Shown here piece by piece: positions 25,463-48,500 of a stretch of DNA of 64,000 nt. The stretch is taken from NCBI GenBank assembly GCA_964057225.1, contig OZ059894.1, positions 14,322,001 to 14,386,000 on the forward strand, written 5' to 3'. The notes under the pieces were generated by a model. The model did no database searches. It saw nothing but the letters and a program-made list of their open reading frames with translations, and was not told the origin of the DNA. Within the stretch, counting starts at the first letter, position 1. Every line of letters begins with the position of its first letter. The translations under genes and the position numbers were made by a program. The DNA is from Auanema rhodensis. Taxonomy: Eukaryota > Animalia > Nematoda.

Positions 25463-27646
25463 AAGAGAGAGAGAGAGGGAGAGAGCAATGCTTCTTTTGA
25501 TTTTAGAAATCAAATAAGATTGTATATGATAAGAAAATTGAAAATGGTAGTTTTTTTGAGAAAATATACAAGAATATATGTATGTATCGAGAATAATATA
25601 CATATATATTGAAAATAAAGTTAAAAAAAAGAGTTATAATGACTTGTTTTCATAAGAAAAAAAATAGATTTAATCATTATTTTATTTTGATAACAGCATA
25701 TTTCCAAAAAATAAACTAGTTTGATTACAATAGTAAGAAAATAATTTTAAGTTATAAACAAAGATAAATTGAGGACAAAATGTTGTAAAAAACTAGATTT
25801 CTTTATGTTGTTATCAGTTAAGTTGAGTAGAAAAGTGAATAGAGTGTGGACAAGTTATGAGTTTATAGGCTAAAGCTTTGTCTAATTTGCCTCATTTCAG
25901 AAAAAGTTTTAAGAAAAATGAAGAGAAAAAGCAAGTTTCATAGATTATGAACTTTTATGTTATCAGCTTTATGATATACTAGAGGGTATGAGGAGTTCAA
26001 GTATTATTTGAATAGTCATCTCAAAATGTAGAGTTCAGCAAAATTATGAAAATAAAAAATAAAAAACGATATGAAACTGAGAAAGTTCAAAACATATTCT
26101 ACAAAAAAAATAAGGATTTGAATAAGTTTCAAATGGTTGAAACTGAAATAAAAGAAAAATTTAATGAAAAATATGTTTGTTTCGAGCAGAGCAGCAAGTT
26201 CTGAGTAAGTACTATATAATCGACTAACAATTAATATATCATGTGATTATTTCTTATTAAATTATATAATATACTGTTTTTCAGTGAAAGAAGAGAGAAA
26301 ATAATATTGTTGGCATACAATGCCAGTAATTACTTCCCCTGAAACCATTTGGATAACTCAAAATGAAATAAAGGAATTGAAATTCAATGACAATTGTACA
26401 GAGTAGCCTTCGTTGGACTTCCTTGACAGTGTTCCCTTTGAATACCAATATATATATATTTATATTTTTAGAGAGAGAGAGAGAGAGAGATAGAGAGAGA
26501 GGGGGGAAGGGAAAGAGAGAGAAAGACTGAGGAATTTCGGAATTTTTAACAATTCTTTTAAAGTAACCCACATACTCCTTCGAGTAGAAGGATTTGTCTG
26601 GTTGCAAATCAAGTTATATGTTCATATATACGAACAATTCAAGAAATAATTTTAAAAAATGCGTGAAGAAATTATAAGATGATGTACTTTTCAATTTGGA
26701 AAAATTTCTGACAAAGTGATGACAATGGTACTGGTGACAGGAAGGATCAGCTGATGGCGACTATATCAGAATTCATGTTCAAGAGGAGCACTAACAAGAA
26801 TACTTCGTCCTTGCATCAGAATCTGAGAAGTATGGCTGATCGACTCAACAAACTCATATTGGGTACTCGATACAGATTCAAACTAGTTTTGAGTTTTCAA
26901 TAGGATACAGATGAAAAGCGACAGAGACATTAGGATGGATTTAAAGCGCCACAGGTGACAGAAGACGGTGTTTTTTAAAAAAACAAATTCAAATAATGAG
27001 GACACATCGTTTGAATGACATGTATACTATGAAAACTGAAAAAGGGGAAGACGAAAATGGCAATCTTTGCAAGAATTTGAAGTTGAAGCCACAAAGAGTT
27101 GTCACTGGTTGAAGAAAATGATTGTCATTCTTCCTGTGGAATCTCAACTAACTCTTTAAGTTGCTATAGAAGAAAACTTAGAATGTTTCAAAGTTTTAAA
27201 AAGACAATTGACAGAACAAAATGATATATATGTGTGTATGTTTATGAAGATAAATAAAAAGAGCAAAAAAGAAAGAATTTGAATAAAAATAGAGAGACAA
27301 AGGAAAAGAGAAGAGAAATGAGGGAGAGTAAGATTAAAGGGTTGAAAAGAAGGGAAAAGGAAATTGTTGTGTCAAGACAAATTGCCCCTTTTGGTCAACA
27401 AAAGCAAATAAAGAGAAGAAAATCCGGTGACGTCCTTGATGTTTGAGAGAACATTCTAAAAGAAAAAGAAACACAAATTGAACAGACATGATCGTTTCTG
27501 ATATGGAGAGACAGGTGGTTTAATCAGTCCTGTTCACACCTTCTCCAGTAAATATCTGCCTTTTGTGTAGAAAAAACTGTAGAATTCTTTAAAATAAGAA
27601 AGATAGATTGAAAGGAGAAAGAGAGAGATAAAGAGAGAGAGAGAGG

Positions 27647-27678
<32 letters not shown>

Positions 27679-30600
27679 AGAGAGAGGGAAAGGGGATGGA
27701 CTGGAAAGAAGGTTAAGAGAGTAGGTAAAAGGAATATGAGATTCGAAATTTCAACTATCAAACATCATGTTAAGTTTAAACGAAACACGGATTTTTTTTG
27801 ATTTTGAGTATAAGTATGATAGATAGATGGGCGGAAAAATAAAGAATAAAACACCAATGATGATGTTGATCAACATCAAAACAAGAACCATCAAAATAAG
27901 AAATGAAAAAAGCTTTGCATTAAGCAGTAGAAAAAAATTTAATAGATGTTACTTTAAGTGGATAACATCATTGAGAATGAAGAAAAAAATTGAAAATATG
28001 AAAAGGGCGCTACAGTGGTCCGTGTTTCCTGAACTCTTGATCCCCTTGAGTCTTTAAGTTTCTCCATAATTCTCTTCCTTTCTCTTACTTACTCTCATTC
28101 CATAGCTATCCTCTAATGGAAGAATAGATGAGTGTTGTGTCAGTATCACATGTTTCATTCCAAAAAGAAAATAAAAAAAAAGAAAAAAGAAATAGAGTAT
28201 GCTGAAGATTATAAAAGTTTTGGAAAACAAAAATAGAAAACTATGTTGTGTACATTATTAGGTTGTGAAATACTTATAAGCTTGAGAAGGTTGATGTATT
28301 TGTGAATCTCAATGTGATTTCTTCATAATCACAAGCAAAGAATTCAAGAAAATATCTAAATTAGTTAATTGAATTCAAATAGAATATGAGATGTATAGAA
28401 TACAGATAGAATGATTGAAACTGGACTTCTTGTGAATCTTATAGACGATAATATTAATTAACTTAAATTCTTCTCATGACCTTTTAAACAAATATCTATT
28501 TTACTTGGAAAACTAACACAAGATAATTCAATTTCTCTTCTAGTTTCGGATAAACTTTGAAGTTTCCTTGCACTGAAAGTTTCAATACTACATCCAAATG
28601 TTGAGAGCATAAAAGGAAAAAACACAAGAACTTTTCTCAAAAATTCTTCAACTATTTCTCCCTCATGCATAGTAAAAAGAAATCAAAAAAAAAACAAAAA
28701 AAGTTATTTATGAGTATGTTATATATCTAAAAGAAGTTTTATGTTTTCATACTTTAAAGAAAGAAAAAGTCAGAGAAAAGGTTTCCGATCGACAACTTGA
28801 TTACTTGGGATTTGATATTGGATTAGCTGTGTAATAGAAGGTATAATCTTTTGCCTAGTGAGCCTATTCAGGATGAATATTCTTCATAAAACATATTGTT
28901 TTTTTTATTTGAAATCGTAATAAATATATGTATAAACCTGATTTGTGGTCAAGAAGCCTGTAAATTGACGAAAAAAAAAGCTGAAAGACCAATATGAAGT
29001 AGATATCTGTTATATATATTGTTAAAACATAAAGAAACGTTAAATCAACACAGATCAACAGTTGTATAGATTTAAAAAATTCTGGGATATATGTATTATA
29101 TGTAGGTAAGAGATAGATTTAGAAAATAAAAAGAAGAAAATCATTTGAGAACAAATTATTCTCCATGATGTAATGAGAGAAAAGATGAAATTGTTCTTCA
29201 AAAGTTGCATAAAAGATTTGAAAAAGCTAAAGCCTTCACAAACTTTTCTTTTGATATCAAAAAAAAAATTTATAAAAAAAAAAACAAAAGCAAATATTAT
29301 AAAGTTAAGAAGAAGATAGAACCTGGAAAAAAAACTGAAATCTAGTTCACGAAACTATTTTTTTGCTCAAAATTCCACAACAATCACAGTGTGTTGGTAA
29401 GCTTGATGATGCTTTGTATTACTAACAACACAACTATTTACTTCAATACATTTCAAGTAAATACATATGACTCTAGCAGAACAAATGAAAATTGGCTGGC
29501 ATGAATGGCGTCTTCGCTCGCCAATTTTCGTTTTGTCATCTTAATCCTTCTAGCTCATCAACATCATTCAACTTATTTCCATTTCATGATCATCTCTTGT
29601 TCACAGACAACTTTCTCTTTAAAAGTTTACCCAACTTTCTATGAGAACTTGAGGACAAAACTGGCCGCCACCTACGCACTTGCGGACCAGATAGAAACAA
29701 CATACCCACGAGAATTACATTTCTATTTTCTATCGTCCTTCATGAAATAGAAGAATAAATTGCTAAGAAACTTCAACATCTTTGTGAGTTCACTACTTAA
29801 AACAAAAAAATTAGTAAAAAGGAAGATATATAGAAGTATATATTAGAATTTATAGAATAACTGAAGCATTATTTCTTATTTTACTTGTTATGTTTCAGAT
29901 TTAACTGGTACATAGAACATAATAATTAAGCTTTTGGATAAGTACTTGATGATGAAATGAACGATTTCTGTTCTGAAAGGTTCAAAAAGAATTAATAATT
30001 TGTTCTGCAAAAGAAGATGAAGAACTGTTAAAAGGTCTGAGTGAAATCAAACATAAAGCCTCTAGAGATTATTTTGATCTTTGAAGCAAATATTATACAT
30101 TTTGGTCATGAATTCAAAACACATACAGACAGACAAGAGATGTGAAAATAACATGAAAAACTGAGAATTTCCAGAATAATCTTTGGAAAAAGCACTTTCT
30201 TTTAGAAAAAAAAAGAAAAGAAATATACAAATAAGTATATTCAAGCGTATAAATTTTCTGATGGACGTCCATAGCCCTACGAATCATCTCAGATAAATCA
30301 ATATTATGTAAGGTTTTCAGTCATCTAGTTAATTCTTGACGATTTTAACAAAATCAAAAACCGATGAAGTCCAATGGCAGAAAAATGAAGAAAAAAAAGA
30401 AAAAAAATTGAATTAAAATTGAAGAAAGCTGATTAGATGAAGTTAAAGCTCAAGTTTGAGCATAATATCGTTTGTGTCAGTTCAGTAAGATTGAAAATAA
30501 TTAAATAAACGTAAATATTTTCTTTTTTTCTTCTAAAAATAGTATTGTACCATCAATTTAAGGATTTTCCACATTTATAATTTCACTGAATTAGGAGGAA

Positions 30601-31693: not shown

Positions 31694-32939
31694 TTAGTAC
31701 AGCTTATTTATGATCGATAAAAATACTGTAAGAGAAATTATAACAATTCCAAATGACCCATTTGCACCTCCGGTCCTCTTATCTAAGTCTGTTTTATCGT
31801 ATATAATTCTGAAAAAAAATTATAATAAAATAAAAATAGTATATACATGTAAAGAGATAAGAAAAAAACTTACTCAGCATGATATATACTACAGCTTGAA
31901 GCATGAGGAGCCTTATGAATCACCGATGGCAGTAACCAACCGCCATAATTGGTCAGAGTGAACTGCGAGACAAGATCATCCCTGTAATACGAATAAAATA
32001 GTATAAAAACTAAGCAATATCAATAAAATAAAAAGGAATTAACGACTAACCAAAGAAGATAACCCTTTTTAGAAAATTCATCTGTATTTAACATGTGTTC
32101 AGTCCAACTATCTTTTGTTGCTATTATATCTGCACGGATATTTTGTTTCTATAATTATCATTATTATCAAATTGATAATTATTATATTTTATTTACATCT
32201 GCAAATCCTATCAGTTTTTCAATGAATCTCACATTAGCAAGGCCATTAGGATTATTCATAAAAGCGGTCTGAATATTCAGCATTTAAATAGAAAACTTTA
32301 AGTTTTCAAAGAAAATATTCTTACATCAATCCACATAAATGTCTTAGATAGTGATATACCAGACAGTGCTGATACGATTTCATTTATAATAACTTCTGGA
32401 TCTTTATTAGAAGTATCATTTCCAGTAAAACTTGGAAGAATCATAAGCTCCAATTTAACGGCATTTTTTGCTAAATATTAGAATCAGAATAAATATATCT
32501 ATCATGTTAAACATACACACATTAAACAGTGCTTGAATAGTCTTGATAGCTTCAGGTTCAACAGCATTATCATAGTAAACACTTAAATATTGAAACATAC
32601 ATACATCTGTACTTTTTAATGAAATAAAAAAGAAATGAAACATACTAGATAAACAACGATTCGTAATCTTTAGCTGTAAAGCAACCAATATAATTTACCA
32701 ATTGAGGATTGTACCAATAATACATTCCAATTCCATATCCTAACGATGCTTTCTGATAAAATATATTATTGTATATTATTAATTTATTTGTAATTTGTAC
32801 ATACTTTGTCAGTTACCGAGCTATGAAGTGTTGTTTCATTAACGAATAATTCCCGTTCTACTAATTTATTGCGAGAAATGAAGGAATACACAGAAGGTAA
32901 CAATGTTGCTAATGATAGAAACAGAATAGTAGATTTCAT
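31694..32939 (-). CDS. GH25 (protist-type) lysozyme-like protein with signal peptide and GPI-type hydrophobic tail, no mucin stalk (paralogue C, about 280 aa)
   Basis: Eight exons: MKSTILFLSLATLLPSVYS...YGIGMYYWYNPQLVNYIGCFTAKDYESLFIY...KLELMILPSF...TFMWIDTAF...ADIIATKDSWTEHM...YLLWDD...TNYGGWLLPSVIH...TGGANGSFGIVIISLTVFLSIINKLY*. The C...Y...F, W.D, I.....W, LW and YGGW..P motifs are those of nematode lys genes. Intron phases 0,2,1,0,0,2,2 are the same as in the 35.5 and 39.8 kb genes. Confidence 0.8.
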
Positions 32940-33232
32940 ATTGTAAAAAAAATGAATAAAAGATATGTTTATAACAAGATGACGATAGGATACGTATTGA
33001 AGTTGATGTAGCTGATAAGAAATAGACAGTTATAAATACTATTCATGATTGTGCAATGGTTATCAATTCGTCATCGATAATCATAGAAAAAGCCTTATAA
33101 TAGTTATTTTTATATTTCTTAAACAACCACAATTTAAATCTGTTTCAATCATATGTATCAATTAAAAGGTGGGACAAAAGAAAAAATTAAAATTTCTATT
33201 AGTCATTTACATACTTATAACGAATGAAAATA

Positions 33233-34511
33233 TTAAATTTGCTCATTTAAAATACTGGAGAGTGTTTCACAAAGTGAAATTTTATTTTTGTCATCCATTG
33301 AAATATAATTTTCATCAGTAAATAGATTTCTTAAAGAAGATTTAGTTTTCGTTTTTACTGCTTTTGAAATTACAGCAAACTAGAAGACAATAGTTAGATT
33401 TGTATGAAAGTATGATTAACTATACCTTCTCATACGATGTATCGTAATTCCAGACTAACGCTAAACGAGTAGTGATCGATATATCCTCATATTGATAATT
33501 CGCTAGATAATCCACTACAGCATTTAAAATCTTATTCATTTTGAAGATTTTTCCAAAATTTAATAATTTCAAGTAATTCTTTTCTTAAAATAAAAATTAT
33601 TACATGATTATTATAAAGAAAACAAACCAGTGATTATATTATTAGCATCATAGAGTACATAAAGTACATTTAGGAGATCAAGATAATCAAACCCATCAAG
33701 CTTAAAGTGTAATTCACTCTTTTCCTGTAAAATAGCGACAATATGTAAAATACAATATTAGTATAACATACATTTGGATCTTCTGGTGTAATAAGCTCAA
33801 GAGATTTACTTTCCTGTTTATCTAAATTGAAGAAATAACATAATATTCTATATTTATATTATTAAACCTAATAAGACACCTTTAATAATATCTGAATTAA
33901 GGCATAAAACCTAAACGATAGTTTAACTAATAAAGAAATAGATCGTGTTATTCTTACTTGGCTATGGCAAAAGAATCTTGCACTGCTCATACAGACTATA
34001 ATACTCGAAAACCCTTCAGTCGAGAAAGAATGAATAGGTAGACTTCTAAAATGAAACAGAATTCATGAAATAAACAAAATTTCTCAAAACAAATGTAGTA
34101 AAAACTACCTTAACCCAGATAACTTTGTTATCATAGCTGTAACAACACATTTTACATCGGGGACAGTTATATTCAAGGAACACTGTTTAACTTTGTTTGT
34201 GAAATGCAATGCCAGCAGATGTGAATCCAAATCTCCTATTTTAGATTTTAAATTATTAAATTGAACATTATGATATTATATTACCATTGACTTCGCATTT
34301 ACAGGTAAGTTCTATCTCAAATTGCTCTTCGTCTGGAAATTTCGTGTTCGGCTCACAGCACAGATCCATATCATTTGATTGTAACATCAGAAACCTATAT
34401 ATTTTGGTTTTTGTTAAATGAAATAGATGAATTGTACCATTTCATTGGTCCGTAAATAACATCTGGAGATCGTTCATTATTCTGTTGAGGATCATATTCA
34501 AGATGAAACAT
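33233..34511 (-). CDS. BTB/POZ-domain protein with a possible degenerate N-terminal MATH-like region
   Basis: Multi-exon model with roughly 45-60 nt introns: MFHLEYDPQQNNERSPDVIYGPMKWFLMLQSNDMDLCCEPN...HSFSTEGFSSYIVCMSSARFFCHSQVLCLNSDIIKGVLL...FKLDGFDYLILLNVLYVLY...LKLLNFGKSSKMNKILNAVVDYL...SSILNEQI*. The F.CH..VL...S and later helical pattern fit a divergent BTB domain. Confidence 0.6.
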
Positions 34512-34788
34512 GGTTTAAATAATAGCACAACTTAGAAAACTTTGAATTTATCATTAATTTCATCAAAATATGATTTTAAATTGATTGGATTTCGTAATTT
34601 TTAGATTTCATTAATAAAAATCGATTTGTTATCATGAAATATTATACATCAGGCTGTGTTGTAATTATGCAAATTTCATAATTCACACGTTTAATGGCAA
34701 AAGAGAAAAACAGAAAGCGATAGCTTGAAACTGATATTCAAATTTTTATTGATCGAAAATAACAATTTTACGGTAAAGTAGAATCTTA

Positions 34789-34855
34789 TATTACAAATTA
34801 TTTGTAAAAAGATGAAGAAGTTTAAGTAATACTTCAAGAATAATACAAAATGTAC
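34789..34855 (+). repeat. 67-bp direct repeat, copy 1
   Basis: TATTACAAATTATTTGTAAAAAGATGAAGAAGTTTAAGTAATACTTCAAGAATAATACAAAATGTAC, identical to 37363-37429. Confidence 0.92.
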
Positions 34856-35146
34856 GATAAGTTTATTAGAATGAACATTCGTTCAAATATGAACATTAAA
34901 AAACAGTAATGATCTGTTTGATTCACTGAAATAGGGTCTTCTAATGAACTTGTGTTTGATATTTCTTGACAGGAGCTGACCATATAAGATTAGCAAACGG
35001 AGAAATTAATACATAAGTCGGGAAGTATGTACTTGCTCATCAAGGACAAGTTCAAATTGACTGCTTTTCTTTCTTTATATGGGAGGGGTTTCTACTAGAC
35101 AGAAATATGAGATAGAGATGTCATTTTCCTTTTGTTTCGTCACTAT

Positions 35147-35393
35147 CTTATCATATTTATTAGCGTATGAAAATAATGTTTTCGAAAAAGGGAGTTACCC
35201 GAGAGAGGCGTGGGTTTCTCTTAGTTCCATATCCTTTACGATCAACTTTATCTTTAAACAACGCCTTTAGATAATTTGTTTATCATTTCTTTATCAAATA
35301 CTAATGGTTAAGTTAGAAAGAATTCCAAAAATTTAATTAAAATTAAAAAAATATTAAATTACAGATTAAATAGATATGTGTTTATGTGATAAG
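35147..35393. promoter_or_regulatory. Cluster of TGATAA/TTATCA GATA sites upstream of lysozyme-like copy A
   Basis: CTTATCA 35147-35153, TTATCA 35280-35285 and 35291-35296, TGATAAG 35387-35393. TGATAA is the established nematode intestinal (ELT-2-type) motif; function here is inferred. Confidence 0.45.
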
Positions 35394-35546
35394 AAAAAAG
35401 TTGAGAAAACGTTTGGAATGCAGTTCAAATACAAAAATGAAAATGGGCGTATGAATCAAAATATAATGTTGAAATGATATTTGAAGATGTCATCTATCTA
35501 AGATTATAAAAGCAATTGCTTAGACCACATTCATATGATATGAACC

Positions 35547-37357
35547 ATGAAGCTTCTAATATTCTTTTCAATTATTTCTCTAAATCTAGTATTAGCAGAT
35601 GATAATGAGGTTTAAGTTTATATGAATTTCTTTTTTAATTTTATATATTTAGCATGGTAAAGCAATAACACAACTAGTTTATGATGATAAACTTATAAAT
35701 CAAATTGAATGTTTAAAAGAAGCTGGATATACTAAACTATTCGTATAGTAATCATTTCTTTTTCTTTTTTCCTTTAAACAAAATAATTTATTTTTAGTAT
35801 TTCTACAGGAAATCAAGTATATCCATATGTGAATACATTAAAAACTATTGAAGAAAGTATGTTTAAACAAGATTATCTAAGATTCAAAATTAAAATTTCA
35901 GATGGAATATCACTTGAACTCATAATATTACCAAATTATTCAATATCTCTAGATCCAGCTGATATACAAAATGTTACAAATGCAATGAAATTGAATAATA
36001 TTAAATCAAAAAATTTATGGATGGATGTTTGTTTATTTGTTTGTTTTTATTTGTTTTTATTTTTTGATTTTAAGACTTCATTAATGCGTTATGAAGATGC
36101 AGACACAGAAGAAAATAAAAAAGATTTTTCTCGTCAGTATCTTATGAGTGTCACAGATACTTTAGAGGTAAATATTAATTATTTCAAGTTTATTCATTAT
36201 TTTTTCATTTTAGCCCATTAATTACAATTTAAATATTTTTTCAAATGAAAATGATTGGAAAAAGAATGTTGGAGATGATTTTAATGAACCAGCTGTTACG
36301 AAAAAACAACTTTTATGGTTAAAATAACTCAAATTATCTTCAAATTATTTATTTTCTTTGAAGGGAAAAGGAAAAGACTTTCAGTACATTTACTCCTTAT
36401 GGTGGATGGACTAAGCCTTCTGTTACTTTCACTCAACACGCCGTTAAGATTTGTGATTTAACTTGTGACGAGTTAGTTCATTCATTTCCTAATTATACTG
36501 ATTATATAAAATATTCTTTTAGTACCTTATATAACATTGCTGATCTTCAAGCTCGACCTCATATTGAAGAAACAACTGATCCCACCGTTGCTTCTACTAC
36601 TACAGCCGAGCCCACAGTCGCTTCTACTACTACTGTTGAGCCCACCGTTGCTTCTACTACTACAGCCGAGCCCACCGTTGCTTCTACTACTACAGCAGAG
36701 CCCACCGTTGCTTCTACTACTACAGCCGAGCCCACTGTCGCTTCTACTACTACAGCCGAGCCCACCGTTGCTTCTACTACCACATCAGAGCCCACCGTTG
36801 CTTCTACTACCACATCAGAGCCCACCGTTGCTTCTACTACTACAGCCGAGCCCACCGTTGCTTCTACTACCACATCAGAGCCCACCGTTGCTTCTACTAC
36901 TACTGTTGAGCCCACTGTCACCTCTGGAGGTTCAACGAACGCCCCTCCAGTCACTTCTGGAGGTTCAACGAACGCCCCTCCAGTCACTTCTGGAGGTTCA
37001 ACGAACGCCCCTCCAGTCACTTCTGGAGGTTCAACGAACGCCCCTCCAGTCACTTCTGGAGGTTCAACGAACGCCCCTCCAGTCACCTCTGGAGGTTCAA
37101 CGAACGCCCCTCCAGTCACTTCTGGAGGTTCAACGAACGCCCCTCCAGTCACCTCTGGAGGTTCAACGAACGCCCCTCCAGTCACTTCTGGAGGTTCAAC
37201 GAACGCTCCTCCAGTCACTTCTGGAGGTTCAACGAACGTTCCTCCAAACTCCGACCGTCCATATAGTACTACATCTAGAATACCAATAACGACTTCATCA
37301 ACATCATCGATAAGATATTTGACAGCGTTATTTGTGATATTAATTATTTTAATGTAA
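35547..37357 (+). CDS. GH25 lysozyme-like protein with Thr/Ser/Pro-rich mucin stalk and GPI-type tail (copy A, 493 aa)
   Basis: Exons 35547-35609, 35653-35747, 35798-35856, 35902-36026, 36075-36167, 36214-36317, 36364-36471, 36523-37357, all GT-AG and in frame. MKLLIFFSIISLNLVLA signal peptide; IECLKEAGYTKLFVY; LELIILP; NLWMDTS; LNIFSNENDWKKNVG; LLW; FSTFTPYGGWTKPS; then (STTTAEPTVA)x11, (SGGSTNAPPVT)x10 and STSSIRYLTALFVILIILM*. Confidence 0.88.
36581..36916 (+). repeat. 30-bp coding tandem repeat, about 11 units (STTTAEPTVA type)
   Basis: Unit CCCACCGTTGCTTCTACTACTACAGCCGAG with variants TACTGTTGAG and CACATCAGAG. Confidence 0.95.
36917..37246 (+). repeat. 33-bp coding tandem repeat, 10 units (VTSGGSTNAPP), unique to copy A
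   Basis: Unit GTCACTTCTGGAGGTTCAACGAACGCCCCTCCA. Confidence 0.95.
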
Positions 37358-37362
37358 TCCTG

Positions 37363-37429
37363 TATTACAAATTATTTGTAAAAAGATGAAGAAGTTTAAG
37401 TAATACTTCAAGAATAATACAAAATGTAC
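37363..37429 (+). repeat. 67-bp direct repeat, copy 2
   Basis: Identical to 34789-34855; begins 5 nt after the stop codon of copy A. Confidence 0.92.
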
Positions 37430-37675
37430 AGAAATTTCTTATATACATATAGTCGAAATAAATTGTTATTTTCCAATATATTCTTAAATTTATTTTCTAG
37501 CAAACTTTCCGAACAATGTTTCTTCATTGAACTCAATTCTACTTCTTACTTATTTGGAAAAGTGTGCTTGATTATTAAAACAATAAATATTATTTAACAT
37601 ATAATAACATATTCACATAGTTAAGACCAGAATATTTGATATCGTGCAAATTGAAACAAACATAATTACTAATAA

Positions 37676-39819
37676 TTAAATTAAAATAATTAATATCACA
37701 AATAACGCTGTCAAATATCTAATCGATGATGTTGATGAAGTCGTTATTGGTATTCTAGATGTAGTACTATATGGACGGTCGGAGTTTGGAGGAGCTCTAG
37801 AAGTGAAGGGAGTAGTCTTCTTCTTTTTTTTATGCTTAGTAGAAGCGTCCGTGGGCTCTACAGAGGTAGTAGAAGCAACGGTGGGTTTTGCTGTGGTAGT
37901 AGAAGCGTCCGTGGGCTCTACAGAGGTAGTAGAAGCAACGGTGGGTTTTGCTGTGGTAGTAGAAGCGTCCGTGGGCTCTACAGAGGTAGTAGAAGCATCC
38001 GTGGGCTCTACAGAGGTAGTAGAAGCGTCTGTGGGCTCTACAGAGGTAGTAGAAGCGTCTGTGGGCTCTACAGAGGTAGTAGAAGCGTCCGTGGGCTCTA
38101 CAGAGGTAGTAGAAGCAACGGTGGGTTTTGCTGTGGTAGTAGAAGCGTCCGTGGGCTCTACAGAGGTAGTAGAAGCGTCCGTGGGCTCGGCTGTAGTAGT
38201 AGAAGCGTCCGTGGGCTCTACAGAGGTAGTAGAAGCGTCCGTGGGCTCTACAGAGGTAGTAGAAGCATCCGTGGGCTCTACAGAGGTAGTAGAAGCGTCC
38301 GTGGGTTCTGCTGTGGTAGTAGAAGCAACGGTGGGCTCAACAGTAGTAGTAGAAGCAACGGTGGGCTCAACAGTAGTAGTAGAAGCAACGGTGGGTTCTG
38401 CTGTGGTAGTAGAAGCGACTGTGGGCTCAACAGTAGTAGTAGAAGCAACGGTGGGCTCTGAAGTGGTAGTAGAAGCGACAGTGGGCTCGGCTGTGGTAGT
38501 AGAAGCAACGGTGGGCTCTGATGTGGTAGTAGAAGCAACGGTGGGCTCTGATGTGGTAGTAGAAGCAACGGTGGGCTCTGATGTGGTAGTAGAAGCAACG
38601 GTGGGCTCGGCTGTAGTAGTAGAAGCGACAGTGGGCTCGGCTGTAGTAGTAGAAGCAACGGTGGGCTCTGCTGTAGTAGTAGAAGCAACGGTGGGCTCGG
38701 CTGTAGTAGTAGAAGCAACGGTGGGCTCAACAGTAGTAGTAGAAGCGACTGTGGGCTCGGCTGTAGTAGTAGAAGCAACGGTGGGATCAGTTGTTTCTTC
38801 AATATGAGGTCGAGCTTGAAGATCAGCAATGTTATATAAGGTACTAAAAGAATATTTTATATAATCAGTATAATTAGGAAATGAATGAACTAACTCGTCA
38901 CAAGTTAAATCACAAATCTTAACGGCGTGTTGAGTGAAAGTAACAGAAGGCTTAGTCCATCCACCATAAGGAGTAAATGTACTGAAAGTCTTTTCCTTTT
39001 CCCTTCAAAGAAAATAAATAATTTGAAGATAATTTGAGTTATTTTAACCATAAAAGTTGTTTTTTCGTAACAGCTGGTTCATTAAAATCATCTCCAACAT
39101 TCTTTTTCCAATCATTTTCATTTGAAAAAATATTTAAATTGTAATTAATGGGCTAAAATGAAAAAATAATGAATAAACTTGAAATAATTAATATTTACCT
39201 CTAAAGTATCTGTGACACTCATAAGATACTGACGAGAAAAATCTTTTTTATTTTCTTCTGTGTCTGCATCTTCATAACGCATTAATGAAGTCTTAAAATC
39301 AAAAAATAAAAACAAATAAAAACAAACAAATAAACAAACATCCATCCATAAATTTTTTGATTTAATATTATTCAATTTCATTGCATTTGTAACATTTTGT
39401 ATATCAGCTGGATCTAGAGATATTGAATAATTTGGTAATATTATGAGTTCAAGTGATATTCCATCTGAAATTTTAATTTTGAATCTTAGATAATCTTGTT
39501 TAAACATACTTTCTTCAATAGTTTTTAATGTATTCACATATGGATATACTTGATTTCCTGTAGAAATACTAAAAATAAATTATTTTGTTTAAAGGAAAAA
39601 AGAAAAAGAAATGATTACTATACGAATAGTTTAGTATATCCAGCTTCTTTTAAACATTCAATTTGATTTATAAGTTTATCATCATAAACTAGTTGTGTTA
39701 TTGCTTTACCATGCTAAATATATAAAATTAAAAAAGAAATTCATATAAACTTAAACCTCATTATCATCTGCTAATACTAGATTTAGAGAAATAATTGAAA
39801 AGAATATTAGAAGCTTCAT
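37676..39819 (-). CDS. GH25 lysozyme-like protein with longer mucin stalk and GPI-type tail (copy B, 604 aa)
   Basis: Mirror image of copy A for exons 1-7 (ATG at 39819). The last exon, 38843-37676, encodes about 31 decapeptide repeats (STTTAEPTVA, then STTSVEPTDA/STTTAKPTVA variants) followed by STKHKKKKKTTPFTSRAPPNSDRPYSTTSRIPITTSSTSSIRYLTALFVILIILI*. Confidence 0.88.
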
Positions 39820-39977
39820 GGTTCATATCATATGAATGTGGTCTAAGCAATTGCTTTTATAATCTTAGATAGATGACATCTTCAAATATCATTTCAACAT
39901 TATATTTTGATTCATACGCCCATTTTCATTTTTGTATTTGAACTGCATTCCAAACGTTTTCTCAACTTTTTTCTTAT
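37679..39977 (-). repeat. Right arm of inverted segmental duplication
   Basis: Homology to the left arm ends sharply at 39977 (partner 35389): the reverse complement here reads TTC|ATAAGAAAA versus GTG|ATAAGAAAA in the left arm. Confidence 0.95.
37837..38785 (-). repeat. 30-bp coding tandem repeat, about 31 units, in copy B
   Basis: Plus-strand unit AGTAGAAGCGTCCGTGGGCTCTACAGAGGT and variants; the first 8 units from the 5' end of the gene match copy A. Confidence 0.95.
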
Positions 39978-42900
39978 GAATCCAGTTATCCTTTGAGGCT
40001 AGCCAAAACTAGAACAGCGCAGCTTTTAGGTTGAAGTGTTGATTAGAAAAGAAACAATCATGATATTTGAGGATATAATATATACGTGTGTGTATATATT
40101 ACGTTGAGAGTCCACAAAAAATTTTTGTTTAAAAGTATTAATTGTTAATTTAGTTGGAATGAACTAAGGACATAATGAATTAATGAGATTTTAACATTTT
40201 TGCTCATTTTGGACGCCCTTTCGTCTTTGGAACTGAAACCAACTGTTTAGCGAAATAGATTATGGAGCTAGAAATCCATTAAATTGCTTTTTCTGCTATG
40301 TAAAACTATAAAATAGAAGAAAGAATATCTTTCGCAAAATTTTATGATTTTCAAACAATTGATTTTATATTTGTTTCAATTTTGATATTTATACTGTATC
40401 AATATATGAATAATAATTCTCAATAAAAACTAAAATAAAGTTTTTTGTGTCTCTTTCTCTCTCTCTTTCTTTCTTTCTCTTTCTCTCTCTCTCTTTCTCT
40501 CTCTCTCTTTCTTTCTCTCTCTCTTTCTTTCTCTCTCTCTTTCTCTCTCACAAATTCTCTTGAAATGTTTCTTATACTTCTTCCATCTATGTATTAATTT
40601 TTTGTTGCAATTTTTAGGGTGAAGAGCTGATATAAGATTCACAGAAGTATGAAAGATGGCTTTGATATTCAGATTTTATTTTTGATTTTCATAAAATGTT
40701 TGTACAAACCATTAATTTAAATATTTTATGAAAATTTAGTTTCTTTTGCTGGTTTAATGCGTTTGAATACTTTCAAAATACTTACTTCAAACAACTATTT
40801 TACATGTAATTACTCCTCAGAATTAACTATTGTTAAAGTGATCAATTAAATAATTAGGTTGTAAACTTGAAAAACTAACGAAGTGATGATGAGTATGAGT
40901 ATGTTGATCAAACTATCTCAATATTCTCTCTGAATCTTCAGTCAATTAAAGAATCTTTTTCAACTATTTGTTTTGTATCGAATTATCTTTTATATTTCTG
41001 TTTTGCATGATGAGGTTTGCATTCAGTGTAATAGTATAGTGTGAGAAGCATTTTGAAGACAAAGAACAGCAGAAGTTGATGATGAAGAACACATTTGACT
41101 CATCTGATTGTTGCACCTAGTTATCGGTATAGGATAAAAGCAGAGAGCAAAGGCGGAATATACCCTTGAAAAAGTTTTGAGAGAGAGAGAGAGTGAGAGA
41201 GAGAGAGAGTATGAGAGAGGGATAGAGAAAGAAAAAGTAAATTGCAGGAGAACTAATCGAAAAGCTCATCGGAAGTCTTTCATATTGACTTCAAAACATT
41301 TCATCTCCATATCTCTCTGGACGAGAAACTGATCATTTTGAGATATTCTTTCATCGCTTGAGGTAATCATACCTCAACTCTATCAACTTCGTACTGCCAT
41401 ACTCAGATCTTTGATCTCTAATAATTTTCAAAGACATTTATATTCCTCGATTTCTGTTCTTGCAGCTTATTTTCTGCATAATAAGTGTATGCAACATATT
41501 TCTCCAGCACTTTATGAAGTTCAACTATTTTATATGTAAGAGAATAAGAACTTGGTAAAACTATATGATAGATTACTATAATCTACAATAAAATTGTTTA
41601 TTCTTTTACCATTTTATGTATTTTATACATAACTATATGATATTTGATAAACTTTATAGTTTAAAAATTAGAAATCAAAAGTAATTGTAAAATATTTTTA
41701 TTTATTTTATGTATCATTTATGCATGGAAATATTTAAAATATATAGCTATGTACATACACATATTTTACTATTTTTATAGATCAAAGAATTCAATCAGTT
41801 TTTATTATTTTACAATAGAAAATAAATAATAATATTAGGTGGTGATTCAATTGATTCATTGCCCAAAGTTTTTAATTTCCTCGACATTTTTGAAGTTTTC
41901 ATCCCTCAAATTGTATTTTCTTGACCTAAACAGATGAAAATCTGTTGAAGCAAGGCTTGGCGAGTAAGAGTATGTGGTTCAGGACGGTCCAGCCCAGTTC
42001 CAGAAACATCTAATAAAATTTTAAAAAAAAACGATTAGTTACGTATACTATATGAATAATGTAAATAGAATCAAACTATATATAAGTTTTATTAACTATA
42101 TAATATTATTTATTTAATTTATAATAAATAGATATGAATATAACAAAAACCATTTTTTTTCAACAAGGACAAGCTATTTTATAGAAATAGCTATTATTGT
42201 CAACATGTTGAGAAGAATAAGTTTGAAAACTTAAAAACAATAATCGAAAATCTTAAACTATGGTCTGTAAAATCGTTCTGATTCATTGGTCCAGATAATT
42301 TAAAGAAAAAAAAATAATTGAACTTTTCGGACAGGATTTGACTGTTTGCATACTTTATGTATATACACATGTATTTATGTATCAAACATCACAACTTAAA
42401 TATCCATAAATACATGGATATTATTATTATTTTCCATCTTATAACATCAAAATATAATATTTTCTGATTCTTTATATGATTTGACTCAAATATACTTCGG
42501 CTTCAATGCGTTTGGTGGATACTTCAGAGCATCGTTCATTGTTAGATCATCATCGTTTCACCTTTCTTTTGTTAAAAAAAATTTATTCCCCCCCCCTTCT
42601 CCTTCTGTTCTATTTTCTTTTTATAATGTTCTTTCCGAGAAAAGTTTTTCGAATTCTTAATAAATAGTCTCAGATATTCTATAGAAAATTTTAAATATTC
42701 TGAATTCATTTGTCATTTTTGGCTCACCTGAATGCCCTGATTTTGAGCTGGGATGATTACGTGAACGAATTCTCGTTGTCTTTCATATTGTCTTGAAGAC
42801 TACATCCTTTAACAACTAGATGACATTTGTGATTCCATACAATTTCATTTTCTTTTCTTTTTTTTTTGAATTTTCATTTTGCTATTTATAGACTTTTGTT

Positions 42901-43104
42901 GGAAAAAAAAGAGTTTTTGAAAAATGAAATACAATTTAAAAACAACAGACTGTTATAATTGAATGATGAATGTGTTAATGTTTAATTTCTTTTATTTTTC
43001 TTATTTTTATCATTATCAATAATATTATAGAAATTTATATTTATGCAGATAATTTCTTTCTTTTTTTTAAACTCCCCTTCTCTCTCTCTATTTCTATCTC
43101 TCTT

Positions 43105-43108
<4 letters not shown>

Positions 43109-43182
<74 letters not shown>
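43109..43182 (+). repeat. (TC)37 microsatellite
   Basis: Longest of many GA/TC tracts in the window (others near 6845, 19980, 25435, 26470, 27620, 40450, 41180, 45545). Confidence 0.9.
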
Positions 43183-43189
<7 letters not shown>

Positions 43190-45016
43190 AATTATTAAGA
43201 AAAAAAGAAGCAGAAGACGAGATAAAATCTCTCTCTCTCTCTCTATTAGTAATTTGTAGTTCTTTCTATCCCTTTATCATTCATACCTATTATTTTTGCT
43301 CTTTTCTTCTTGACCAACGGACATTTTAACAAGCGATAAATACAACATGTCCTTCCTACTTTACAACTAATTTGAAGCTTTTCTTCGTTTTCTTTTTATT
43401 TGTACATTTCTTCTCACCAAACGCGTGAAGTATTACGATTTGAAAGTTTTAGTGATGAAAAGCTTTAAATTATCTGAGTGTGAACATTTATATTTAAAGA
43501 AAAAACTTTGTGATGTACATAAGCAACAATAAAATACGAGAAAGACATCATTTTCTTTTTACTTTGATCATATATACATACATATCTTCTTTCGACCATC
43601 TGTTACTTTTATATATTTTATTTTTAAATTTGTTAAATCATTTCGTAAAGGATAGTTAACTCACATTTCTTTTTATTTCGTAAATGTAAATCGTTTAAGA
43701 CTTTTTGACAATAACAACTTGTGATTGTTAGCTTGATTGAGTCAGATGATAGTAGTCGAAATGGGATATGGTTCACTTAATGATTGTTTAGTGCACTTTT
43801 CATTCTATATCTTATACATGATAGACTACTAACTATTGTAGCTTAAAGAGCTTTGTTGAAGACAACTCATGATGGCATCAGGTGTTTCCACCAATAGTTT
43901 TATCCTTCGAGCAGGAGACTTACAGCCGGAAACAAGCTCAAGCTTTAGACAAATCTGTGAAAAAGATTTAGAAATTGCATATGTACGTCATCTGAATATA
44001 TGAAGTAAAATTTTCTTTTTTTTCTTGTTTCTCAACCGGAACGTTTTTCTTCAATTGGTACTAGCCAACGTGGCTTCCGAACATGTGACCGCGACTATTA
44101 AGCAGATTCTTACCTTTCAACTTTCAAAAACGTTCAATTCATATTTATTTTCCTTTGTTCAATAGATTTTCATTCAATTTCATTCAATTTCTAGTAACAA
44201 GTTAACATTTTTCATGCTTAAACTTTTATTTCTTTTATAAAAATTTATTTTGTCTTCAATCTTTTATCATTTAAATACTTCTTCAGAATTTATTACAATT
44301 TATTAGGATGTAGTAGCAATTCATAGAATGCTGTATGTTTTTCTTTATTCATTTTGGCCTCCATGCTTAAAAAGTGCAAAAAGTTTCAAGTTTATAGCTT
44401 CTAATGACTAAACTTTAAATTACAAATTCACTTTTTAACGGAATCTATTTTCTTTTTTTGAATTTTTAAACCAAAAATATGAACAGCAGCATTTCTGTAT
44501 AAGAACTGTCATCCAATTTTTTTCTTAGAAATCCTATCAGATTGTCATTGCATATATCAGAATATTTACAAAACAATATTAAAAAAATAATATAAAATGA
44601 CAGATTAGATACAACTCTATCTATCTATCTCGTCATGTTATCCAAAAATAAAAATTTCATTTATGGTATTCATATACATGTACATATACACAGACATACA
44701 TAATGTATAAATACATTGTACATGTGTATAGCAAGGATATATCAAGCTTTTGCCTAGTTGATACATAGAGAATTGAGTATGTATGTACATATCTATGTAT
44801 GTATGTATGTATGTATATGGTATGTTATATCATATCATATCATATTAGATACATATATACTATATATTATATAAAAAAAAATATTTTTATAACAAAAAAA
44901 AATTATATAAAATAATAAAAAAATTTATTCAAATTATTCAAATCAACCTTTTTTTTCGATTTTTTTTAAAATTAAAATTAGTTTATTAACAGTACATATT
45001 AATATATTTTATATTA

Positions 45017-45053
<37 letters not shown>

Positions 45054-45540
45054 ATTCTTCAATAGTATTATTTTTGAAGAAATAACGAAAAAACAATAGA
45101 TGAATATGCTATGTATGCTGTATGTGTCCTATTTGCCTATCATATTTCAAGTAGATTTTATTTTTTTTTTTTTTGTTGCAAAAATCTTTTTTTATTCAGA
45201 TTGTAATTAACAAATTTAAATATATTCTTGTACTGATATACAGGTGAAATGATGTATCAAAATGAAAATACAGTCTCTTTGTCGTATTTCATATTGCTGG
45301 ATCATTAAAAAACATTCAGCTGATTTTCTTCTCTTTTTTTTGTTTTGTTTTTCAACTTATGTGTATCTATTTCACATTTCATTTGCTCTTTTCTATTATA
45401 GATCGTACTCAATTTAAAAAAAAAAAAGATTAGGACAATGAGAGAATAAAAGAGATTATAACAGAATAAGAGATAGAGAGAGATAGAGAGAGAAACATGA
45501 AGAGATTTGAACATAAAAACAAAATTTGCCATTTGTAGGC

Positions 45541-45595
<55 letters not shown>

Positions 45596-48500
45596 TGTAT
45601 GTTATAGTAATAAGTAGCAGTGCATTTTGTCTCAAGACAAATACTAGGTTATCCTGAATGAATTGGTACAACTCATCATATATCTCAAGCATTATCGTCT
45701 ATCATCATTATCAAAATATTTCTTTCAACTGATACCTTTTCCTCAAAATATGATCTTTTTAGATAAAAAAGAAAAATTCAAACTCTTCATACTATTGTAG
45801 AAAAACAGAAGATTTTCATTTCTTTTCTTTGCTAAAAAAATCCAAATAATCCCATATAAGGAAACATAAAAAAATTCTCTGTATATCCTTCTTATATTTT
45901 GATTCTTATCCTGCTTTTCATCAATTTTCTCGTTTTTAAAACAAATTTGTTCTATCAAAATCTATTCAAAATGTGATAAACTTTTCTCTTTACAGCAAAT
46001 TTTCCTTCCCTCTTCATGCAATATGTTTTATGATTTTTATTGGATTTTCATCAAAAATCTTTGTGCATTTCATAGCTGATCCTTTCGATATTTCTTCTCG
46101 ATCTTTCTTTTTTTTCTATTTTGCCGTTTCCATCTTGTTTTACAAAGGTTGTTCGTAATAAATGACCAGTTGTTAAACTAAATCAATCTGTCGTTTTCAA
46201 TTCCCTTATTGAATATCCTCTAATCGGTGTTCCAAATTGAAGGAAAATTTCCATATTTTCAACTTTATTTCCTTCATTAATGTTATTAACAAGTTTTTTT
46301 TTATTATTTTGTCTTAATATCTCATTTCATTATTCTTTGTTTTAACTTGATTTGAGAGTTATGATGATTATAGACGAATTTTTAAATTCATCTTTCATCT
46401 CGTATGCAGTCTATGAGTCTCGTAAATGAAAGTAAAAATAACGTTTTCCTGGTTCAAAAATAGAAATTTGTTAATTGGACTAGAAATTATTTTGAATTTC
46501 TGTTATTATAAATGTATTTGACTTATATAACGACATCTTAGTATCTCATCTATTTGTTTATATTCTATTCTTCTCTCAAGGTGGCCCCCAAGAAAAGACA
46601 AAATATTCAGAAAATTTTTAAAATTTCGTTTCAGCCCAGTAAGGTAACAGATCAAAACCTTTTATTTCAGATTTTTTATATTTTCACAGTTGAAATTAAG
46701 CTCGATTATAAGCTCAATTAAACAGTTGGTCAGTGAGTAGTGGGTGAACATTTTCATCAAAGACCACGAAGCTCACCCAATTGCGTCACCCATTCAGAAC
46801 AACTGCTTTTAATATTCAATACAATAAAAGAAGCGACGTTTCTGTTCATTTTTTTTCTAAAATCATCTCTATTTTCATATACAATCACTATATCAAATAA
46901 TAATCTTTGATTCTCTCTATTCTCATATTGGACATATTACTTTATATCTCTCAAACTTTATTTCTCTCTCTCTCTTTCTCTCTCTCCCTTTCTCTCTTGT
47001 TTTCAAAATCTGTATTCTACTTCTCTCGTATCTTTCAACATCTTCAAAGCATTTCTCTCTGCTGGATAAAATTTAAAAATAGATTTCCTGCAGAATACCC
47101 CCTCCCCCAGCTGATAGGTTGTACAGGCTAACTCCAGAAGATATAGCAGACCACACAGATGTCCTTTTAATCTGTTCAACAAACTTTCAATTGTTATATC
47201 TAACTATATGTATATAACTATATATCTATATATATATATATATATCTATATATTTCTTATAAAGTATATATTTAACATATTTTATTTGATTAGTTTCTAT
47301 ACTTTTTTTCATAAAATTTGCAAACAATTCATTAACTATATAAATATCTTCTTCTATTACTCCTCCAACCACAAAGAATCAAAAAATCAGTTTTTCTCAC
47401 TAATTGCTGATGTTTTTCCCCTGAGTACAAACTTAATTTTTAGATGATATCATCAATAGTATGCATTACTTTCTCATAATTTATCAGCATCCTAAGTTTG
47501 CCCTTGTAATATCCTCAAACTCTTTACTATATCTTCTCCTCCCTCACCACATTTTATAATATACTATAAACTTAACAAACATATGCAGTCACAGTTATTT
47601 CATAAAATTTGAATCAAATAACAAACTCCAATATAATTTTTATACTTCTAACAGTTGATCTAATACTGAGTCTTTTTCTGCTATAACATAACTCAATACT
47701 TCGAATATTGGCAAAAGTAGTTTGAGTATCGTACGAGATGACGTTTGATGCGTTTAATGGCATATTTTTTGTTCTTTCAATCATTGTTAGAACAATGTTT
47801 GATCACAATTTCTTGGAGCTTATGCTATTGCACCTTTTCGGCATGCTTAACTCAATACTTCTAAAATTCCTTCCGTTTTTCTTTTTTTTTCTACTTCTTC
47901 TTTTTGTCACTTTCACTGAAATATATACATAAATTGTCATCTTACACGCATTTTTCTTCCTTTTTCTTTCTAAATAAACCTTTTTCTATCTCAATTTTAA
48001 TGTGAATGAATAAGCACTAAGGTAATAGCATGTGAATATGTTTGTGAGTGGGTGCTATACCACGATCTTTCCCTCTTACATTTCCTCAAACCAACATCAT
48101 TATCCTGGCATCGCCTGACCAAAAGAATCACCGATCTACTATGCATAGGCCTCATGTCACATTAGACCTTCATGTGCTTCTCGTCCTCAACTATCAACAA
48201 GTGCTCTAAGAACAGAGTTTGTCACCACCTTGACTAGATGCTGGCATCTGGTATAAGATGATGTTTTTCATTAGCTCATTCACTAACCCAATTATCAGTA
48301 ATATCAACACTGTTAATTGATCTATTAAATTATAATAAATTACTACGTAAAGCTCAAATCTTATATAGAAATAGTTCATACATATATTGGAGACAATTTC
48401 CATAAATTGCTTAATATAGCAACAAAAAGATGTAAAAAAGAAATGGTGAGTATGAGTCAACGAAATGGAAATGAATGTATAAAGATAGAGAGATAGGGAG

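Follow-up and report, generated by a model that had tools for sequence, protein, structure and literature searches.

Nematodes lack the classical peptidoglycan receptors known from insects and mammals, and how they detect bacteria at their epithelial surfaces is therefore still an open question; to our knowledge they possess neither PGRPs nor any accepted bacterial pattern receptor. A 64,000-nt window of the Auanema rhodensis genome (contig OZ059894.1, positions 14,322,001 to 14,386,000 of the forward strand; all coordinates below are those of the window) holds three related genes, which a preliminary description took for surface-tethered, non-catalytic relatives of GH25 lysozymes. The locus raises the question whether their globular "heads" are lysozyme-fold proteins that bind wall sugars without cutting them. 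If they are, the three genes would be a natural and directly testable candidate for a recognition, decoy or adhesion layer; if they are not, the genes would be ordinary lineage-specific surface mucins, of local interest only.

Gene models and transcripts

Models built from the sequence comprise three genes of eight exons each, in which all introns are GT..AG and 43–69 nt long:

31694..32939, minus strand: g1, 8-exon model, 281 aa; at least six of seven introns seen spliced out in RNA contigs of four runs
35547..37357, plus strand: g2, 8-exon model, 493 aa; at least six of seven introns found as joints in RNA contigs
37676..39819, minus strand: g3, 8-exon gene, 604 aa; model mapped through the inverted repeat

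The region originally delimited runs from the stop codon of g1 (31694) to the ATG of g3 (39819), and our models end at both points. The g1 product consists of a signal peptide, an N-terminal extension of ~25 aa, a head of ~200 aa and a hydrophobic tail, and has no stalk. In g2 the signal peptide and head are followed by a stalk of 227 aa and the tail, and g3 is a mirror copy of g2 whose head and tail are the same and whose stalk measures 338 aa.

Spliced RNA contigs, taken from four runs (X1–X4) of a single study, reproduce as joints at least 12 of the 14 introns modelled in g1 and g2. In g1 these are 31981/32051, 32148/32197, 32268/32325, 32470/32517, 32581/32646 and 32752/32805; in g2 they are 35609/35653, 35747/35798, 35856/35902, 36167/36214, 36317/36364 and 36471/36523. 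Two introns, 31808/31874 and 36026/36075, are absent among the joints listed; RNA reads are "cut" at either place, and an RNA joint confirms the intron of g1 whose position corresponds to 36026/36075. Hence g1 is expressed, together with g2 and/or g3, whose transcripts are indistinguishable in the RNA contigs because their heads are identical. The heads of g1 and g2 are only ~20–25% identical, and all seven intron positions are common to both genes; together with the gene models, these positions support the proposal that the three genes are related. The possibility that the exon 2/3 boundary marks a frameshift or pseudogene was considered and rejected, as the true donor (GTAATC) lies two bases further on; the intron at this boundary has phase 2 in g1 too, and its joint is confirmed by RNA. 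The intron motif CAACCG(C/T)TCA is absent from g1, g2 and g3.

Secretion signals, stalks and C-terminal tails

The segments that flank the heads are as follows:

32883..32939, minus strand: g1 signal peptide, 19 aa, with the cleavage motif V-Y-S, by inspection of the translation
31697..31771, minus strand: g1 C-terminal tail, with a small-residue patch (GGANGS), a 15-aa apolar stretch and NKLY, by Kyte-Doolittle analysis
36581..36915, plus strand: g2 stalk array 1, 11.2 copies of a 30-nt unit encoding the 10-aa unit EPTVASTTTA and variants
36917..37246, plus strand: g2 stalk array 2, 10 copies of a 33-nt unit encoding the 11-aa unit VTSGGSTNAPP
37292..37354, plus strand: g2 tail, with a Ser/Thr patch (..S-S-T-S-S), IRY and an apolar end of 12–13 aa, with nothing after it
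37837..38785, minus strand: g3 stalk array, 31.6 copies of a 30-nt unit, with a distal block of the variant EPTDASTTSV
37679-37741, minus strand: g3 tail, with 2 differences from the g2 tail in ~115 nt

Inspection of the N-termini bears out the signal peptides ascribed to all three genes: each has a short n-region, a hydrophobic core of 10–12 aa and small residues at −3 and −1, and the signal-peptide-like segment ends in VYS|F in g1 and in VLA|D in g2 and g3.

The stalks, previously estimated at 0, about 220 and about 310 residues, measure 0 (g1), 227 (g2) and 338 aa (g3), the last being somewhat longer than claimed and equivalent to about 31 units of 10 aa. Of the second g2 unit a single degenerate remnant is left in g3. 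Thr and Ser together account for 44–50% of the stalk residues and Pro for 10–14%, and the stalks make up 46–56% of the g2 and g3 proteins. Tandem repeats rich in Thr, Ser and Pro are the mark of a mucin-like domain, and both proteins have them; such a composition suggests that the stalks are O-glycosylated.

At the C-terminus we find, as first described, a hydrophobic tail whose cytosolic part is very small or missing: 13–15 apolar residues, after which there follow no residues in g2 and g3 and four (NKLY) in g1. Small residues (S/G/A/N) lie 5–10 positions upstream of the terminal apolar stretch, and in g1 Kyte-Doolittle 19-residue windows reach at least 1.6 at residues 258–263. The tails display the features of a GPI C-terminal signal (small residues at omega and omega+2, a short spacer and a hydrophobic tail of 10–20 aa), which are a rule of thumb only. 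Alternatively, the tails could be single-pass membrane anchors of type I proteins without a cytosolic domain. We consider this unlikely: it agrees with Kyte-Doolittle 19-residue windows above 1.6 at all three C-termini and with the four residues that follow the apolar stretch of g1, but the unbroken apolar run amounts to no more than 15 aa in g1 and 13 aa in g2 and g3, where it ends the protein, and the small-residue patch is found at the expected omega distance. Since 13–15 aa do not suffice for a normal membrane helix and small residues precede the run, a GPI signal fits better than a transmembrane anchor, and we predict GPI attachment for the products of all three genes.

Possible relationship of the head to lysozymes

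The GH25 fold assigned to the head in the preliminary description is unsupported in Pfam, PDB, HMMER, hhalign and hmmsearch analyses. These tests are weak, as the homology searches were run exon by exon (19–48 aa), the query profile of the head comprised two sequences and the GH25 domains used as templates were of phage rather than nematode type, and they leave GH25 neither shown nor excluded. Pfam hmmscan with ten references (exons or E3–E5 read-through) gave no match to PF01183 (GH25) even at E≤10, and the stalks matched only low-complexity families (Extensin_1, Pro-rich) below the cut-off. No relatives were retrieved from protein libraries with the g3 tail, a 144-aa read-through and exon 7 within a 330-aa stop-free reference; these libraries evidently lack this proteome, because the genome's own proteins were also unmatched. 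Neither phmmer searches of the PDB with three pieces nor scans of JGI metagenomes with exon 7 and exon 4 alignments identified any relatives. HMMER comparison of the E3–E5 read-through with 1.84 billion representatives returned only two bacterial repeat proteins (cadherin/RTX and CHAP/He_PIG), which we rejected as spurious. The ESM Atlas feature matches Band_7 and Methyltransf_FA were likewise rejected, being below the informative level. An AlphaFold model of the E3–E5 stop-free genomic piece, in which two introns are translated, was unusable (pLDDT 51, pTM 0.31).

For direct comparison we used eight phage GH25 domains, namely Cpl-1 and seven diverse ones; a Cpl-1 search of viral contigs yielded relatives only at ≥79% identity. 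Against these domains the heads gave an hhalign probability <1% and hmmsearch scores at the level of shuffled sequences (500 shuffles). Our own global sequence-profile and profile-profile alignments gave z = −0.2 for g1, 2.5 for g2 and 1.0 for the profile, none of which is significant.

In the unsupervised global alignment with the eight domains (z ≤ 2.5) the conserved blocks nevertheless fall in GH25 order: L-W-M/I-D is placed on L-x-L-D of the DxE strand, L-L-W on S-L-W and P-S-V on P-S-M. The order in nematode LYS sequences is presumably the same as in the heads, i.e. a helix that contains Cys, then G-Y, a hydrophobic strand with Pro at its end, an L-W-x-D strand, L-L-W, then G-G-W..P-S-V..Q and finally Cys. 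We regard this collinear run of motifs, which resembles both GH25 and the nematode LYS proteins, as a lead only.

Catalysis in GH25 enzymes depends on an N-terminal Asp (G-x-D-x-S) and on D-x-E, corresponding to D10, D92 and E94 in Cpl-1. The motifs originally quoted for these sites are indeed present, HGKAIT and WMD|TS in g2 and g3, YGIGMY and WID|TA in g1. In the best global register (z ≤ 2.5) the equivalent of D92 is kept in all three genes as W-M-D or W-I-D, the E94 position is Ser or Ala, and the D10 position is Ala or Gly; the claim that the head is non-catalytic thus depends on a GH25 alignment that is itself statistically unsupported. In g2, Y-E-D occurs five residues after W-M-D-T-S, so an acid close to the site may exist; in g1 the 20 positions that follow W-I-D hold no acidic residue. 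The proteins might be still-active muramidases, tethered at the gut or pharyngeal surface and using non-canonical acidic residues, for example the retained Asp of W-M/I-D or those of Y-E-D in g2. This we judge very unlikely. All three genes retain the Asp of the strand equivalent to DxE, and acidic residues come just after it in g2 and g3; moreover, in 2011 the protist-type LYS proteins of C. elegans had still not been shown to be biochemically active (PMC3169628), which means that the rules of catalysis in this clade are not yet settled. On the other hand, g1 lacks the downstream acids, the N-terminal Asp is replaced in the only plausible register, and heads that are only 20–25% identical are unlike a constrained active site.

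The head could also be an orphan nematode-specific domain unrelated to lysozymes, which would make the genes GPI-anchored or secreted mucin-like proteins of the surface coat or glycocalyx, with a role in lubrication, barrier formation or immune masking and no link to peptidoglycan. Such an origin is possible, if doubtful: all homology tests were blank, the collinearity of motifs is not statistically significant and the stalks occupy 46–56% of g2 and g3, but the order of conserved blocks matches GH25 without guidance, and g1, which has no stalk, keeps the head and the tail. The latter observation points to the head as a conserved functional unit.

The explanation that we favour, with moderate confidence, is that the three genes encode GPI-anchored, O-glycosylated surface proteins with a non-catalytic head most likely diverged from nematode LYS. 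They would be paralogues from a fast-evolving nematode gene family, each encoding a secreted globular head of ~200 aa that is held at the outer face of the cell membrane by a C-terminal GPI-type signal and, in g2 and g3, is raised on an extended and heavily O-glycosylated Thr/Ser/Pro stalk. The head would most likely be a diverged relative of the "protist-type" (GH25-like) LYS lysozymes in which the N-terminal Asp and the DxE Glu have disappeared, and because of this loss it would bind glycan, not cut it. We infer the GPI attachment, the O-glycosylation and an origin from LYS/GH25, as well as the loss of catalysis, the binding of glycan and the tissue; as a matter of pure conjecture, the proteins could act as receptors or decoys.

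We found no description in the literature of a GPI- or mucin-tethered GH25-like nematode protein. The closest known proteins are the protist-type (Entamoeba-type, GH25-like) LYS lysozymes of nematodes, such as lys-1 to lys-10 of C. elegans (PMC2383907, PMC3169628). Like them, the proteins described here would be secreted, with a head of ~200 aa, and belong to a large and fast-diversifying multigene family. Unlike them, they carry a C-terminal hydrophobic tail and, in g2 and g3, a mucin-like stalk; they would also have substitutions at the presumed catalytic Asp and Glu positions, and they gave no significant sequence match. Pattern-recognition proteins derived from dead enzymes include PGRP-LC and PGRP-SA (amidase fold), GNBPs (glucanase fold) and chitinase-like lectins. 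The concept proposed for the heads is the same, a hydrolase fold without catalytic residues reused as a surface glycan binder, but their folds and phyla are different, and binding and signalling have been demonstrated for them. The plant proteins LYM1 and LYM3 are GPI-anchored peptidoglycan receptors (PMC4683077); GPI tethering (predicted here), an extracellular position, peptidoglycan binding (a proposal here) and the lack of a signalling domain would be common to both groups; LYM1 and LYM3 have LysM domains and neither a lysozyme-like fold nor a mucin stalk. Two groups of nematode mucin-like proteins, which are secreted into a lumen or onto a surface, likewise join a Thr/Ser-rich tandem-repeat stalk to a small globular domain. 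One is formed by the TES mucins, surface proteins of Toxocara. The other comprises the PHAT proteins of the C. elegans pharyngeal glands (PMC2563036). In contrast to g1, g2 and g3, the globular domains of both groups are SXC/ShK, and GPI anchoring is not known for either group.

The g2/g3 palindrome

g2 and g3 form a tail-to-tail palindrome:

35389..36925, plus strand: left arm, with 158 nt of 5' flank, exons 1–7, seven introns and the first repeat units
38441..39977, minus strand: right arm, inverted-repeat partner of the left arm
37376..37661, no strand: palindrome centre, unique and AT-rich, between the two 3' ends

The arms extend over 1537 nt at 99% identity. Between 35389 and 36840 (1452 nt) they do not differ at a single base, and this part takes in the 5' flank as well as all seven introns; all 15 differences sit inside the repeat array, and identity stops abruptly outside both arms. 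g2 and g3 would thus be a tail-to-tail duplicate in which heads, introns and promoters are held identical by gene conversion or by the recency of the duplication, and the repeat arrays may expand and contract independently, leading to different display heights. The fullest version of this scenario, namely a family of GPI-anchored, catalytically dead lysozyme-fold lectins that capture peptidoglycan at the gut or pharyngeal surface, with a gene-converted pair and array slippage tuning how far the head stands above the glycocalyx, we regard as quite unlikely.

The base identity of the arms over 1452 nt, and the fact that RNA contigs do not tell the two heads apart, might also indicate an assembly artefact that joined two alleles, or two array-length variants, of a single gene. 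To this we assign little probability: fold-back assembly artefacts give palindromes that are perfect throughout, but here the centre (37376–37661) is unique, the ends of the arms are sharp with unrelated flanks, and the arrays are unlike in the type of their units as well as in copy number. The locus thus presents a clean palindromic gene pair, in which identical coding heads, introns and promoter are combined with diverging internal repeat arrays.

Gene models and transcripts

Reading all three frames of both strands, with boundaries set by script, we modelled three related genes (g1, g2 and g3), each encoding a signal peptide, a head of ~200 aa and a hydrophobic C-terminal tail:

31694-32939, minus strand: g1, 8 exons, 281 aa
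35547-37357, plus strand: g2, 8 exons, 493 aa
37676-39819, minus strand: g3, 8 exons, 604 aa

The preliminary description had placed three related genes between 31694 and 39819; these outer coordinates match the ends of the g1 and g3 models exactly, and the models together with the RNA joints described below bear out the three genes themselves. The window is AT-rich (GC 23-39%) with short, nematode-like GT-AG introns, and in the three genes all 21 of 21 introns are GT..AG, with lengths of 43-69 nt. The intron motif CAACCG(C/T)TCA is absent from g1, g2 and g3. Between exons 2 and 3 the reading frame at first seemed broken, but a donor two bases further on restores it; the phase-2 intron at this boundary is also present in g1. 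The heads of g1 and g2 are only ~20-25% identical, and the fact that they nevertheless share the position and phase of every intron is good evidence, at the level of gene structure, of common descent.

Spliced RNA contigs were available from four public runs of one 2019 study. Among the joints listed, six of the seven introns of g1 and six of the seven of g2 are matched to the base; the ends read GT..AG in g2 and CT..AC in g1, which is on the minus strand. The remaining two joints, one in each gene, fall at positions where reads "seem cut". Thus, g1 is transcribed and spliced as modelled, and so are g2 and/or g3, which we assign jointly because their heads are identical and the g3-specific array lies outside the stretch compared with the contigs. 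Introns 3, 4 and 7 of g2 and g3 measure 45, 48 and 51 nt, and since all are multiples of three and stop-free (35857-35901, 36027-36074 and the mirror positions in g3), their retention would preserve the reading frame. If retained, intron 4 would add 16 very hydrophobic residues directly after the W-M-D motif. Joints for g2 introns 3 and 7 are present in the RNA contigs, and that for intron 4 is absent among the joints listed.

Termini and stalks

The N-termini read by inspection as signal peptides (...V-Y-S|F in g1, ...V-L-A|D in g2/g3). At the C-terminus, g2 and g3 carry a Ser/Thr patch, I-R-Y and 12-13 apolar residues up to the end of the protein, and g1 carries G-G-A-N-G-S, 15 apolar residues and N-K-L-Y. 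An apolar run of 13-15 residues is typical of a GPI signal and short for a membrane helix, and by this rule of thumb all three tails are typical predicted GPI signals. Between head and tail, g2 has a stalk of 227 aa (a 30-nt unit repeated 11.2 times, followed by 10 copies of a 33-nt unit) and g3 one of 338 aa (31.6 repeats of the 30-nt unit, including a distal block of variants), with Thr+Ser at 44-50% and Pro at 10-14%; g1 has no stalk. On the minus strand of g3, 37790-37840 encodes a Lys-rich linker, K-H-K-K-K-K-K, derived from an A-rich run between array and tail, and the same region holds the only remnant of the 33-nt unit in g3, a single degenerate copy. Linker and remnant show how the g2 and g3 stalks diverged. 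The earlier reading of these proteins as tethered at different stalk lengths is well supported by their sequence features, namely signal peptides, stalks and hydrophobic termini.

The head domain and its relation to lysozymes

The same description had taken the head for a non-catalytic GH25 lysozyme domain, which our searches did not recover. The spliced models were searched exon by exon (exons of 19-48 aa), the longest stop-free pieces being E3-E5, with two in-frame introns translated, and E7-E8. Pfam at E<=10 gave no glycoside hydrolase for any exon or stop-free piece, and phmmer with three pieces gave no match in the PDB. Three word-index protein searches returned zero matches, even the proteins of A. 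rhodensis itself being missing; ESM Atlas look-ups were uninformative, and two metagenome scans yielded zero relatives. An exhaustive HMMER search retrieved only two bacterial repeat proteins, which we rejected as irrelevant on their Pfam content. AlphaFold reached a pLDDT of 51 on the E3-E5 piece, introns included.

As a reference we aligned Cpl-1 and seven diverse phage GH25 domains, in which D92, E94, W149 and Q175 (Cpl-1 numbering) are invariant (n=8). Some of the comparisons used the spliced heads and others exon-pair alignments, with a query profile of two sequences only. The hhalign probability was <1%, hmmsearch scores lay inside the shuffle distribution, and forced global alignments gave z = -0.2 (g1), 2.5 (g2) and 1.0 (profile-profile). 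As none of these is significant, homology to phage-type GH25 is not detectable with this two-sequence profile. The nematode LYS clade is itself remote from the phage enzymes, so a LYS relationship stays compatible with the blank comparison.

In unguided global alignments the conserved g1/g2 blocks land in GH25 order:

Conserved head blocks and the GH25 motifs aligned with them (z <= 2.5)
G-x-[A/G]-I-[T/M]: G-V-D-V-S
L-E-L-x-I-L-P: G-x-Y-H-F strand
L-W-M-D, M-W-I-D: L-x-L-D
strand after the L-x-L-D equivalent: Y-Y-S-Y
L-L-W: S-L-W
P-S-V: P-S-M

In this register (z <= 2.5) the catalytic D-x-E motif would keep its first Asp; Ser (g2/g3) or Ala (g1) would stand in place of its Glu, and Ala or Gly in place of the N-terminal Asp. 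An acidic residue may still lie near the putative site in g2/g3, because Y-E-D occurs five residues downstream of W-M-D-T-S. The blocks are presumably closer to C. elegans LYS than to phage GH25, in what we take to be LYS-like features: a Cys-containing helix before G-Y, a strand with Pro at its end, and G-G-W..P-S..Q with a Cys after it. Block order and this presumed likeness make a LYS origin of the heads a lead; a GH25 fold is plausible, as is a "dead enzyme" devoid of catalysis.

What is directly observed comprises the genes and their transcripts, the repeats and the hydrophobic termini; from GPI attachment onwards we infer the mechanism. The proteins would enter the secretory pathway and exchange the C-terminal signal for a GPI anchor, and O-glycosylation of the Thr/Ser/Pro arrays would yield stiff stalks displaying the head ~0, 227 or 338 residues off the membrane. 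Provided that the head is a barrel of LYS descent lacking the acid/base Glu, it could bind glycans and serve as a receptor, an agglutinin, a decoy or part of the glycocalyx. We give this account as a whole, that of GPI-anchored, stalked, LYS-derived glycan-binding surface proteins, an even chance. In Caenorhabditis there are up to 15 lysozyme genes, of which ten are protist-type and fall into two clades (PMC2383907, PMC3169628). Neither of these papers refers to a GPI anchor or transmembrane segment, "membrane" appearing in PMC3169628 in other contexts only; as of 2011, canonical C. elegans LYS lacked biochemical proof (PMC3169628). The open-access literature on nematode lysozyme, GH25, GPI, mucin and surface coat gave no account of the head, stalk and tail architecture. 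Should the fold hold, it would represent a lysozyme-like pseudoenzyme that bears a GPI signal and a mucin stalk, a variant on a known theme.

The g2/g3 palindrome and its surroundings

The genes g2 and g3 form a palindrome with their tails facing each other:

35389-36925 and 38441-39977, inverted: arms, 99% complementary
37376-37661: centre, unique sequence

Over 35389-36840, which takes in exons 1-7 and each of the seven introns as well as 158 nt of 5' flank, the arms show zero differences; the 15 differences between them are all confined to the repeat array. The final ~115 nt of coding sequence are near-identical (2 differences), and beyond the arms identity ends sharply. An assembly artefact is unlikely because the arrays of g2 and g3 differ in the type of their units and the centre is a unique sequence. 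The pattern is consistent with gene conversion acting between the two inverted copies, or with very recent duplication, the arrays expanding and contracting independently.

About 700 nt upstream of g2, 34782-34868 (plus strand) repeats, over 87 nt and at 93% identity, the beginning of the g2 3'UTR (37356-37441). RNA contigs span 34789-35094, and in two runs a contig "goes back", by way of the shared sequence, from 37362 to 34789; the upstream copy may be the 3'-end relic of a lost third copy, or the contig an assembler cross-join. The interval between g1 and g2 holds a further spliced gene:

33124-34234, minus strand: gene with RNA contig joints 33379/33426, 33723/33771 and 33821/33868 (CT..AC ends)

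Its contig depth is below that of g1 and g2, and by tblastn it does not resemble any of the three heads. In the gene-poor, AT-rich flanks of the cluster, long (GA)n/(CT)n microsatellites occur at scattered sites (27530-27700, 40420-40640, 43000-43250, 45300-45700) and give rise to spurious Glu/Arg/Lys or Leu/Ser ORFs.
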